Source: Asterias rubens
Lineage: Eukaryota
Assembly (NCBI RefSeq): GCF_902459465.1
Contig: NC_047079.1
Coordinates: 8,060,001 to 8,124,000, forward strand
Length of the DNA: 64,000 nt
Direction: 5' to 3'
The notes under the pieces: generated by a model
The model's database searches: none
Told to the model about the DNA's origin: nothing
Seen by the model: only the letters and a program-made list of their open reading frames with translations
In this document: piece after piece, positions 3,439 through 6,390 of the stretch
Position numbering within the stretch: the stretch's first letter is position 1
Layout of the letters: the number at the start of each line of letters is the position of its first letter
Program-made: the position numbers and the translations under genes

Positions 3439-6390
3439 ATGGCAACCAATGTACAGACATCGCTTGGCAAGATTGAGGACAGCATTGAGTGCTCAATTTG
3501 CACCCATCGGTTCAGGGAGCCAAAGTGGCTCAATTGTTTTCATACTTTTTGTCTTCAATGTCTTCAAGAAATCTGCAAGAACCAGAGGCCACCAAGAAAC
3601 AACATTCCTTGTCCACTGTGCAGACAAGAAACCATCTTGAATGGAAATGTTTCTGATCTGCCAGATAATTTAGACATGAAGATTCTTGTGAACAATTTTA
3701 CACAGCAGGAAAATGTTTTAAAACAACAATTTGAGCAATTACAGGTTTTTTCTACACTAGTTGCCAAAGCCAGAAGAAGTAAGACTGAGTTTGAGCTGTC
3801 AGGGGAAAATATTGACAAGTCCCTTACGAAACTGGACAAAGTGTTTTTGGACACCAAAGAAAAGATCAGCAGAAAAGCTACCAAGGAGGTATCAAGGATC
3901 AGAGATGAGGAGCAAAAACTGATAAAGGAGGCAGAAACTATTCATAAAAGTAAAGTTGAGTTTTTAAAGAGTTTGCAAACCTCCGACAGAAGAGAAGCAT
4001 CACAGACAGCACGCAAACTAGATGAGGTCAACCACCTTATGGAAGGAGGATCCAATAATGGCAACAAGGGTCATGATTTCAAGAAGAGAATCTGCAAAGA
4101 TCTTGAGAAGGCAATAACGAAACATCCACAGTCTGTTCCTGATGGTTTGACCTTCATGGATCTTAAAGAAAATGATGTGATGATATCTCTTGGTGAACTA
4201 GTGCAGAATGATGCTGACCTGATCTTACTGGTAGTTATAATTCTTGTATTTATTGGGTAACTTGAAGAAACTAAGAATAGCAGACTGATCAATGTTTATG
4301 CTATACTCTGTCCCAGTACATTACAAAAGCCTGATGCTTACTCATTGGGAATAACATGAGTCTGTCATCATGAAATTGCAGTTACATTGAGAAAGTGCGC
4401 TTTGTATCGGACTGTTACAGACTTTTGGGCAGAACCTGTGATAAGTTAATGGATTCAAGACTGTACACATTTACAGTCACTTAAAAGACAAACTTGTGAT
4501 GAGGATTCAGATATTTGTCTTTGTTTGGTTTGTCTTGAATTTTGGGGACTTTAGTAACATATAGACAATTCAAAGACTCATAAATTGATTGTTTCAAGAA
4601 AGAAACCAGGGACTGGATTTTTTATCAAGTTTGTTTACCAAATTAATTGTATTATCGGTAAATGCTTATCATAAGGCTGACAGCACCAAGGGTTGGGGGA
4701 GTTGATGTCATTCCAAACCATCATGATATCCAGGGTCAATTTTGCAGAATTCCCCTAAGCTTACTGGTCCTACCATAAAACTGCAATCCCAAATGTTAGC
4801 ATTCTGGGTTTTACATGTAGTTGTTGTGAACTAATGAACATAATGTTTATGTTGTACACTTGTTTTACTTTCTAATCATGCATGGTTTGCAATAATTTTA
4901 CCATGAAACCATTAATGTTTTTGCCTGCAGGACAAGTGGACCAGACAAACATGTGCCAAGAATACAACCAGTGTACTAAAATATATATACAAAGAAGGTA
5001 AGAGTAAAAGTGGATTTACAAGACAAACAAACTCCATTGAGTGAAAATGGGATGCATTTGTTCCAATGTGAGATATGAGTATTCCTCAATCATAAATGAC
5101 AGCAATTCAAAATGGATTTGCTTTTACCCTTTTTAATATATTTTAATCAGTAATTGATTCAAATTACAAATAGAACTGGTTGGCTCAGCATCGTGGAGGT
5201 ATTAGCGCAGTTTGGATTTTATTAAATCGCTTTTGGGTATTTTTCAAGGATCTCCCGGTAAATGGGGTTTATTGATCAAAAGTGGTCTCCAAAGTAAATA
5301 ACAGTTATTTTCTGAATAAAACCATAATTTCTGGGTTTTGGTATTTTTTTTGGAAGATTTGTTGTAATAAGCATTTTGATTAATGACTTTAATATGATCA
5401 ATTGCAATTTACAACTTTGTAGCACTCAGCCGACAAACTGTCCATTTCACGCACAGTCACTCAGACATTAGTGTTTACATTAGTGTTTATCTGGTTACAG
5501 ATCAATGGAGCCCTCTAAATCCAGAAGGGAAGAGGGTTTATGATCGCGACTTTCTGCTACAGTTTCAAGGAAACTACTATGAGAGACCTAAAGGACTCCC
5601 GTATGTTCCAGGCATTACTCTTGAACAGGTAAATAAAGAAATGATCTTTATTTATAAAAACTGGTTTTATTTTTTTTTACAGTAAACATAACTTGTACTA
5701 CTGCACCGGCTGCAAAACTTGCTCGCTGTTGACAATTCAACATAGTTACTATGATTACTAATTAAATCTTTTTAATTAAAGTGAATGTACAATACAAGTA
5801 ATGTAATTTGTATTTCACATTATAAAGTTCATACTTTTTTCAAAGTAAACAATTTTCTTGAGAAAATTTTAAAGAGAAATTATGTCAATATTTTGACTCG
5901 AAGTAGGCACTACCTGTAAAAAAGTACATCCAGTCCCTTTTTGGACCACTCTTCTCAAATTCTGTATTGTTTATCAAACTGTTTATTTTTGATCTGGTAG
6001 CCCAATGACAACTTTCTCTCAACGGCTGCCATGATGGCACACCGCACACAACAAGTTCGAGTGCCAGCGTTTGGTCTACCGGTAAGTTAACCAGTTCATG
6101 TTAACCAAGTAGATTGCATTGGACGTGACTCATCCCCTTAGGCTATAGGTCCCAAGTGGTTATTTAAGATGAAATTAACCATTTTTAAGAGAAAGTGTGG
6201 CATTTCGACTCGAAGTAGGCAGTACCTAGCTGTTAAAAATGCCCATCCATTATGTTGACCACTCTTCTTATAATTGTTCTGTGTTGTTTATCAACATCTG
6301 TCAATCTGGTCGCTCAAGATGCACAATCCACCAAAGGCTGTCATGATGGTACAGTCCCCCATACAAGAACCTCGAGTACCAGTGTATCAG
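3439..6390 (+). CDS. Chimeric RING/coiled-coil (TRIM-like, no B-box) protein with eIF4G-derived eIF4E-binding module; 3' end unresolved
   Basis: Exons: 3439-4230 (ATG just after acceptor TTAG at 3436; C3HC4 RING CSIC...CFHTFCLQC...CPLC then heptad-rich region; donor CTG|GTAGTT, phase 0), 4931-4997, 5501-5628, 6001-6081, 6319-6390. All junctions are GT-AG and frame-consistent. The 4230-to-4931 join is the least certain. Confidence 0.7.
4931..5628 (+). CDS. Two exons homologous to the eIF4E-binding region of eIF4G
   Basis: 4931-4997 DKWTRQTCAKNTTSVLKYIYKE joined in phase 1 to 5501-5628 DQWSPLNPEGKRVYDRDFLLQFQGNYYERPKGLPYVPGITLEQ. Matches recalled human eIF4G1 [29 protein letters not shown]...QKPEGLP; YDRDFLL fits YXXXXL-phi. 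Confidence 0.9.

Follow-up and report, generated by a model that had tools for sequence, protein, structure and literature searches.

The availability of eIF4E is a central switch of cap-dependent translation, and the switches known to act on it are the phosphorylation-regulated 4E-BPs and a few specialized eIF4E-interacting proteins. Translational repression also involves TRIM-NHL proteins, namely, Drosophila Brat and Mei-P26 and LIN-41. eIF4G holds eIF4E through two motifs that bind its dorsal and lateral surfaces and jointly set affinity and competition with the 4E-BPs (PMC8558276). Ubiquitination of eIF4E is known to occur via CHIP/cIAP1 (PMC5575267), and synthetic eIF4E degraders are being developed (PMC11868579, PMC12774438). 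Here we analyze a stretch of 64,000 nucleotides (nt) of the genome of the echinoderm Asterias rubens (the window, 100% identical to LR699109.1 of assembly GCA_902459465.3 from base 8,060,001), in which an initial annotation had proposed a RING ubiquitin ligase that captured the eIF4E-binding module of eIF4G. We find that the gene in question, LOC117302278, is a genuine, expressed, Asterias-lineage chimeric gene. The structural interpretation of the initial annotation is correct and the evolutionary origin of the chimera can now be explained; the functional interpretation is a prediction and is plausible.

The spliced coding sequence of LOC117302278 comprises 1263 nt and encodes 420 amino acids (aa), with a single terminal stop codon and none internally. 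The product matches RefSeq XP_033642034.1 ("uncharacterized protein LOC117302278") at every residue, and a model of the gene is already public in RefSeq for two Asterias species, yet it is unstudied. All coordinates given here refer to the forward strand. The transcript begins with a 5' untranslated region (5'UTR) exon at 2985-3064, whose 5' end is a minimum; a contig of run X2 joins 2985-3061 to 3434 onward, and the 3-nt microhomology at this joint resolves to a GT donor at 3065 and an AG acceptor at 3435-3436 (intron 3065-3436). The start-codon exon (3437-4230, aa 1-264, ATG at 3439), delimited by its open frame and by RNA contigs, encodes the RING and the coiled coil and ends in frame at 4230, before a phase-0 GT donor at 4231. 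Next come a short exon at 4931-4997 (aa 265-286 plus 1 nt), the eIF4G-type eIF4E-binding exon at 5501-5628 (aa 287-329), a low-complexity tail exon at 6001-6081 (aa 330-356), a further tail exon at 6319-6390 (aa 357-380), and the last coding exon at 6928-7404 (aa 381-420), of which 6928-7050 is coding, the stop codon lies at 7048-7050, and the remainder is 3'UTR. The 3'UTR reaches at least to 7404, and contigs of comparable depth extend to ∼8174.

The RNA evidence consists of Logan assembled contigs of the runs X1, X2, and X7 (each from a different study), which are ∼98.5% identical to the window and for which the RNA label of the runs is partly guessed. The joints 4230/4931, 4997/5501, 5628/6001, 6081/6319, and 6390/6928 are present in contigs of all three runs, every one with GT..AG borders, and a single 1732-nt contig of X2 covers the 5'UTR exon and every coding exon and continues into the 3'UTR. 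The initial annotation had joined the RING exon in frame to two short eIF4G-like exons (4931-4997 and 5501-5628) and had quoted their peptide, both of which are exact, and the three junctions that it predicted (4230-4931, 4997-5501, and 5628-6001) all occur in spliced contigs, as do two further joints. Its description of the exons as stop-free and splice-intact also holds, but the gene does not end at 6390 as it had supposed, the coding exon at 6928-7050 and the 5'UTR exon at 2985-3064 having been added. Read-through from eIF4G was rejected as the main form of the transcript, since the spanning contig begins with its own 5'UTR exon at 2985; alternative exons may still lie further upstream. Run X9, from a second organism, covers introns and exons alike with ∼5% differences and therefore behaves like sister-species DNA, and RNA runs from that same organism also contain part of the motif exon.

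The C-terminal half of the chimera carries the eIF4E-binding region of eIF4G, as identified by Pfam, by alignment to crystallized fragments, and by tblastn. Exon 5503-5628 (42 aa) matches PF21140 ("eIF4G1-like eIF4E-binding domain") with 28.4 bits (cutoff 27, E = 1.7e-6), and the same family is precomputed for the A. amurensis ortholog and for the A. rubens gene call. The fragment of human eIF4G1 that was crystallized on eIF4E (5T46_B, E = 2.6e-12) aligns with residues 280-333, as do Drosophila eIF4G fragments (5T47/5T48), with both motifs and the linker covered. Pattern search and alignment place the canonical eIF4E-binding motif Y-x4-L-phi at 5539-5559 (YDRDFLL, aa 300-306), and the degenerate pattern occurs once in the window and in none of 100 shuffles. 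In an AlphaFold2 model built as a single chain from a 43-row alignment, the C-terminal half is disordered except for a short helix at RDFLL (aa 302-306). At 5593-5622 lies GLPYVPGITL, the counterpart of the non-canonical (lateral-surface) motif, which reads GLPHISDVVL in human eIF4G1. By homology, P.GLPYVPGITL stands column for column with PEGLPHISDVVL of 5T46_B and with all echinoderm eIF4Gs. The positions conserved when 20 metazoan eIF4Gs are aligned (from echinoderms, hemichordates, molluscs, and vertebrates), LKY.Y.EDQWSP.NPEGK..Y.RDFLLQFQ...P.GLP..P.I.L, are all kept in the chimera. PF21140 and the 5T46_B alignment thus bear out the earlier reading of this segment as eIF4G sequence with a YXXXXL-phi motif and a downstream auxiliary motif. 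A tblastn search of canonical eIF4G against the entire window matches only 5500-5628, and Pfam likewise finds no MIF4G, MA3, or W2 domain; the chimera is therefore not an eIF4G, in keeping with the initial observation that no MIF4G/MA3 exons follow. The 4E-BP family PF05456 reaches an E value of 0.024 with 15 bits, below its cutoff of 24.

The full-length eIF4G gene of A. rubens (XP_033642512.1, 1714 aa, with PF21140, MIF4G, MA3, and W2) is the immediate upstream neighbor, in the same orientation. Bases 1-26 of the window are its final codons and stop, and bases 3-26 read AEEDPAK followed by the stop codon in frame 3. In an extended sequence of the locus, L002, of which 30212-40237 corresponds to the window at 100% identity, the gene lies within 10001-30237 and ends at 30237. 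The chimera begins ∼3 kb downstream of eIF4G, its 5'UTR exon lying 2.9 kb past the eIF4G stop. A separate full-length eIF4G locus therefore exists and the initial annotation was right to keep the two genes apart, but the adjacency of the parent, with its stop at base 26, had gone unnoticed.

The motif exon at 5501-5628 and the parental exon at L002:18328-18455 agree in length (128 nt) and in intron phases, from which we conclude that the chimera derives from a tandem DNA duplication. The preceding exon ends in KYTYRE/G before the gt donor in the parent and in KYIYKE/G in the chimera, with the donor at the matching codon position. The LKYIYKE encoded by the 3' part of 4931-4997 is eIF4G-derived (LKYTYRE in the canonical protein), and the eIF4G matches found by phmmer start at aa 269-275. 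Further downstream, exon 6001-6081 occupies the position of the eIF4G linker, although little similarity to the linker is left, and exon 6319-6390 is a tandem duplicate of exon 6001-6081 including the upstream intron (5890-6095 aligned with 6195-6400, ∼70 to 80% identical). Taken at the level of exons, these comparisons indicate that the eIF4E-binding exons of the neighboring eIF4G were tandemly duplicated as DNA, with their introns, downstream of the parent, and the equal exon length and phases uphold the exon shuffling that had been proposed. The duplicated exons then became spliced to one TRIM2/3-like RING/coiled-coil exon that has lost its B-boxes and NHL domain.

The duplication is old, since 43 of 128 nt differ between the motif exon and the parental exon, the introns of the chimera can no longer be aligned with those of the parent, and synonymous sites are saturated (proportions of differing synonymous and nonsynonymous sites, pS 0.82 and pN 0.21). 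At the protein level, tblastn of eIF4G against the motif exon gives 63% identity (E = 2e-13). A retrocopy origin was rejected because the duplicated exons are still separated by introns that match those of the parent in position and phase. Recent gene conversion from the parent, considered as a source of the synonymous changes between species, was rejected as well; the motif exon differs from the parent at 43-44 of 128 nt in both Asterias species, and at the five differing sites neither species is systematically parent-like.

The N-terminal half contains a C3HC4 RING finger of the TRIM2/TRIM3 type (aa 18-61, 3490-3621), as found with Pfam, phmmer, AlphaFold2, and Foldseek. The RING scores 27.9 bits against Pfam zf-C3HC4 (cutoff 21, E = 2.2e-6), and a phmmer search of the Protein Data Bank places it closest to the human TRIM2/TRIM3 RINGs with E values of about 1e-9 (9e-10 for the TRIM2 RING). 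The hallmarks of a RING E3 ubiquitin ligase are intact, including the eight zinc ligands, the Ile of CSIC, and the Pro and linchpin Arg of CPxCRQ, and they align with the TRIM2 RING solved with UBE2D~Ub (aligned signature CSIC...CFHTFCLQC...CPLCRQ). The AlphaFold2 RING has a predicted local distance difference test score (pLDDT) above 90, and its best Foldseek match is the TRIM2 RING-UBCH5C~Ub complex (8AMS, TM score of 0.84, root mean square deviation of 1.9 Å). A long coiled-coil helix of 125 residues follows (aa 78-202, 3670-4044, pLDDT about 85-93), which we infer to be a TRIM-type dimerization module, and a shorter helix is predicted at aa 210-227 (4066-4119).

Residues 5-100 of the chimera match the RING and residues 105-260 the coiled coil of echinoderm RING-B-box-coiled-coil-NHL proteins. 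The closest full-length relatives of this half are echinoderm "TRIM2/3/56-like" proteins of about 600-670 aa that consist of a RING, B-box(es), a coiled coil, and NHL repeats. All of the relatives examined carry B-boxes. In the chimera, Pfam finds no B-box at E values up to 1 and the AlphaFold2 model passes from the RING into the helix at aa 78, so that the annotated combination of a C3HC4 RING and a coiled coil without a B-box is upheld by both methods. An NHL beta-propeller is likewise not found by Pfam in the 420-aa product, whose tail is predicted by AlphaFold2 to be disordered. Elsewhere in the window, open reading frames (ORFs) at 41760-48400 belong to an unrelated TRIM-like gene with a RING, B-box, and coiled coil; they have no similarity to the RING exon of the chimera at E < 0.01.

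The same fusion is present in a related species, a comparison that the initial annotation had called for. The A. amurensis ortholog is represented by two isoforms (XP_071805547.1, 406 aa, and XP_071805548.1, 390 aa), its exon 1 is 95% identical to that of A. rubens, and the locus is syntenic in an independent assembly, with the order eIF4G, chimera, Tmem26, and F-box gene. In the window, the Tmem26 exons lie at 8802-9077 and 12212-13021, followed by the F-box/FBA gene at 13758-14213, and this order is the same in A. amurensis. In the A. amurensis sequence (CP134969.1), a segment reaching from the 5' part of eIF4G to intron 1 of the chimera has been tandemly duplicated, and the resulting order is a full eIF4G, RING copy 1 with a second, internally deleted eIF4G, RING copy 2 with the eIF4E-binding exons, and Tmem26. 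RING copy 1 belongs to a second chimera, XP_071805546.1 (759 aa; L003:43987-48127 and L001:1-6650 in our extracts of CP134969.1), in which it is spliced to an eIF4G without the eIF4E-binding, MIF4G, and MA3 exons; a separate 205-aa W2 gene call follows, and the RING/coiled-coil exon shares 90% aa identity with that of the first chimera. This second combination of RING and eIF4G is absent from the A. rubens assembly. Over the 792 nt of the RING exon, copy 1 differs from A. rubens at 34 positions and from copy 2 at 25, and A. rubens differs from copy 2 at 16, making copy 1 the most diverged of the three. The eIF4G/chimera locus is rearrangement-prone.

The wider distribution of the fusion was assessed by HMMER with the A. 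amurensis ortholog against 1.84 billion representatives. Among the best 150 matches, a RING and the Y.R.FL motif occur together in two, the Asterias cluster and Branchiostoma XP_078614810.1. Word-based searches with the RING exon and the motif region returned the Asterias cluster alone and are uninformative for other species. The Branchiostoma protein (LOC144883967) is a Gnomon model with a RING, B-box, coiled coil, PF21140 motif, and MIF4G. A Gnomon model of Dreissena polymorpha that spans 73 kb (XP_052217168.1, LOC127835025) has two PF21140 motifs, a B-box, a coiled coil, and a C-terminal region, without a RING. These predicted models may be independent fusions or artifacts of gene prediction.

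Selection was measured between A. rubens and A. amurensis by the Nei-Gojobori method. Exons 1-4 together have 16 nonsynonymous and 9 synonymous differences (ratio of nonsynonymous to synonymous rates, omega, of 0.46). In the RING/coiled-coil exon, 13 nonsynonymous and 3 synonymous differences give an omega of 1.1, not different from neutral. The eIF4G-derived exons (4931-6081) have 3 nonsynonymous and 6 synonymous differences (omega 0.135, binomial P = 0.005), and for the motif core (aa 280-329) the numbers are 1 and 6 (omega 0.04, binomial P = 5e-4). Exon 1 differs from exons 2-4 in this respect (Fisher test, P = 0.03). The eIF4G-derived exons are thus under purifying selection, and the earlier suggestion of function, made from stop-free exons, finds its counterpart in the low omega of the motif core in the YDRDFLL exon. 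No indel is found in 1068 aligned coding nt versus 9 events in 1559 intron nt (P = 0.002), exon 6001-6081 included, and the introns differ by 3.1%. None of the 13 replacements in exon 1 falls on a zinc ligand or on a residue that contacts the ubiquitin-conjugating enzyme (E2). Across the whole gene the reading frame is therefore maintained, as is the eIF4E-binding sequence, while the sequence of the ligase half is weakly constrained or diversifying.

Our proposal is that LOC117302278 encodes an eIF4E-directed competitor combined with a ligase, a predicted function to which we would give somewhat less than an even chance. With the YDRDFLL helix and the non-canonical motif, the disordered C-terminal half would contact eIF4E on its dorsal and lateral surfaces, as eIF4G and the 4E-BPs do, and the tail probably does bind eIF4E. 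Since the chimera has no MIF4G, MA3, W2, or PABP-binding part, eIF4E held by it could not recruit eIF4A, eIF3, and PABP, eIF4F would not be assembled, and cap-dependent initiation would be blocked. Dimerization through the coiled coil would make the chimera bivalent, and the TRIM2-like RING would recruit a UBE2D-type E2~ubiquitin to eIF4E or to its neighbors at the cap, with degradation or a regulatory mark as the outcome. Which protein receives the ubiquitin is a more tentative matter; eIF4E or a neighboring protein is perhaps the substrate. The substrate-binding NHL domain of the TRIM relatives would in effect have been replaced by an eIF4E-binding peptide.

Several observations weigh against this combined competitor and ligase. 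The omega of ∼1 on the RING/coiled-coil exon would look like relaxed constraint on the ligase half, albeit on small counts, and weakens the case for ligase activity as the selected function. Where the RNA contigs depart from the reference in exon 1, most of the changes are nonsynonymous as well: the second RING loop (3597-3604) reads RNNI in the reference and SNKL in the three RNA runs and in A. amurensis, and further replacements are V5A, E123K, and E202S (3452, 3805, and 4042-4043). The ligase half is highly nonsynonymously polymorphic. In the eIF4E-binding half, the non-canonical motif differs from canonical eIF4G at several residues (H>Y, I>V, D>G, and V>T), and the affinity for eIF4E could be lower as a result. 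The tail past the motif changes fast, with one exon duplicated in A. rubens, and the A. amurensis exon that matches 6319-6390 is present in altered form in isoform X1 and spliced out of isoform X2. Finally, the fusion is seen in Asterias alone; the Acanthaster and Patiria proteomes, both annotated, yielded TRIM-like and eIF4G matches and no protein with both a RING and PF21140 among the best 150 HMMER matches. This narrow known distribution and the weak constraint on the ligase half limit the significance of the proposal.

The uneven constraint raises the question of whether the RING acts on eIF4E at all. LOC117302278 could be a dimeric 4E-BP-like competitor only, in which the RING and coiled coil serve as a dimerizing, stabilizing, or self-destabilizing (auto-ubiquitinating) scaffold and neither eIF4E nor the cap complex is ubiquitinated. 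Such a role agrees with the concentration of purifying selection on the eIF4E-binding exons (omega of 0.04 to 0.14 versus ∼1.1 for the RING exon) and with the lack of eIF4A-, eIF3-, and PABP-binding parts, and eIF4G fragments and 4E-BPs that bear both motifs do compete with eIF4G (PMC8558276). A RING would nevertheless be superfluous in a plain competitor, and in three diverged RING copies the zinc ligands and E2-contact residues are kept, with no indel or stop in 792 nt; we therefore regard competition without ligase activity as a rather unlikely account. Relaxation could also extend to the gene as a whole, a young transcribed chimera that has no organismal function, arose as a by-product of a rearrangement-prone eIF4G/TRIM locus, and is drifting to loss. 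The restriction to Asterias as far as databases show, the omega of ∼1 over two-thirds of the coding sequence, the unstable C-terminal exons, and the further product of RING and deleted eIF4G in A. amurensis (XP_071805546.1) are all in its favor, but the duplication is old, with introns unalignable and synonymous sites saturated relative to the parent, and in spite of this age the motif exon has stayed intact (1 nonsynonymous and 6 synonymous changes between species), no indel disturbs the frame, and all splice sites are intact and used in at least three independent RNA data sets. On this evidence, a functionless chimera is unlikely. Least of all do we favor an artifact in which mis-assembly, eIF4G read-through, or a gene-prediction error joined unrelated exons. 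Storage of the runs as assembled contigs with a partly guessed RNA label brings a general risk of this kind and nothing more specific, while the intron-less joined form is found in three runs of three studies with GT..AG at each joint, the chimera has its own 5'UTR exon well past the eIF4G stop, and gene order and exons are repeated in the independent assembly of a second species, which makes an artifact extremely improbable.

Two further roles would keep the ligase active and give it another meaning. Viruses have proteins that bind eIF4E or that attack eIF4G near its eIF4E-binding site, and picornaviral proteases cleave the linker of vertebrate eIF4G. A TRIM-type ligase with a virus-targeted eIF4G segment built into it could accordingly be an integrated decoy or sensor of innate immunity that traps or ubiquitinates viral factors. 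Echinoderm TRIM-like families are expanded and fast-evolving, with many TRIM2/3/56-like paralogs at ∼40% identity, omega values at or above 1 and many nonsynonymous polymorphisms as in the RING and coiled coil are typical of immune genes, and the captured piece is exactly the eIF4E-binding region and the linker before MIF4G. A decoy would, however, be expected to track its parent or to diversify, and here the conserved part is the decoy part; moreover, the linker that is cut in vertebrates is not recognizably conserved in the chimera. We consider this role decidedly improbable. The most far-reaching view is that of a natural, encoded eIF4E degrader, a dimeric TRIM-type ligase with an eIF4G peptide as its receptor, which would remove or mark eIF4E, or one class of eIF4E, to shut off cap-dependent translation; the combination of a TRIM-like scaffold with the eIF4G motif would then have separate origins in echinoderms, amphioxus, and bivalves. 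In this strong form the view, too, is unlikely.

Other features of the window were recorded alongside the chimera. An Rfam match to the histone 3'UTR stem-loop (RF00032, 37.1 bits, gathering score of 34) lies at 2615-2660 within a segment, 2571-2722, that has contig depths of 10^4 to 10^6 in all runs and no adjoining histone ORF; this is probably either a repeat present in very many copies or the stray 3' end of a histone gene. A second element of very high copy number, whose contig depths sum to 10^5 to 10^6, occupies 8149-8189, where the 3'UTR contigs of the chimera stop, and some contigs join the area of 8189 to 2642 in the opposite orientation. Inverted repeats flanking the chimera were considered for this 2642/8189 joint and rejected, as no such pair was detected and repeats of very high copy number account for the signal. 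At 9643-10177 and 19733-20591 there are long tandem repeats in which several frames are open on each strand, and ORFs at 54632-56803 resemble, by eye from their translations, exons of GMP synthase (glutamine amidotransferase and ATP-pyrophosphatase parts).

If the proposed function is true, the coupling of an eIF4G-type grip on eIF4E to a TRIM RING would be a new form of eIF4E regulation, competition plus ubiquitination, and a natural counterpart to the synthetic eIF4E degraders. The chimera is in addition a clean, datable case of gene birth by tandem duplication of a short-linear-motif exon beside its parent. Translational activation at echinoderm fertilization, through loss of 4E-BP and assembly of eIF4E with eIF4G, is a classical experimental system (PMC6387300, PMC4786324), and because the chimera occurs in echinoderms the hypothesis is directly testable in oocytes and embryos.

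Compared with known systems, the chimera shares with eIF4G (XP_033642512.1; human eIF4G1, 5T46) the bipartite eIF4E-binding region and its LKY.Y.EDQWSP.NPEGK lead-in, with 63% identity to the parent in the motif exon. In contrast to eIF4G, it lacks MIF4G, MA3, W2, and the N-terminal PABP-binding region and carries a RING and coiled coil, and without these effector domains it cannot scaffold eIF4F. The 4E-BPs and other eIF4E-interacting proteins (4E-BP1-3/Thor, 4E-T, Cup, Mextli, and Angel1) occupy the dorsal and lateral surfaces of eIF4E in competition with eIF4G (PMC8558276, PMC3763552), as the chimera would likewise do. The 4E-BPs are not homologous to it, however, because its motif region is eIF4G-derived (PF05456 is sub-threshold), and in the literature searched no RING E3 domain was found in a described eIF4E-interacting protein.

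With the TRIM-NHL proteins (human TRIM2, TRIM3, and TRIM32 and echinoderm TRIM2/3/56-like proteins) the chimera shares its RING type and the homology of the coiled coil. Those proteins have a B-box and an NHL propeller, whereas the chimera lacks both and has a linear eIF4E-binding motif in a disordered tail instead. The predicted proteins of Branchiostoma (XP_078614810.1) and Dreissena (XP_052217168.1) resemble it in combining TRIM-like modules with a PF21140 motif, but they differ in domain order and content, and their RING and B-box parts have a different origin from the Asterias exon. Our literature search found no paper that names LOC117302278 or describes a RING/TRIM-eIF4G fusion, in line with the initial annotation, and no natural single-chain equivalent of an eIF4E-directed E3. 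The closest functional parallels are CHIP/cIAP1 and the engineered degraders, which have in common with the chimera the concept of bringing an E3 to eIF4E to control its level. These are, however, chaperone-linked ligases or synthetic bifunctional molecules, whereas the chimera has an E3 domain and an eIF4E-binding peptide, with the activity that this predicts, in one natural polypeptide.

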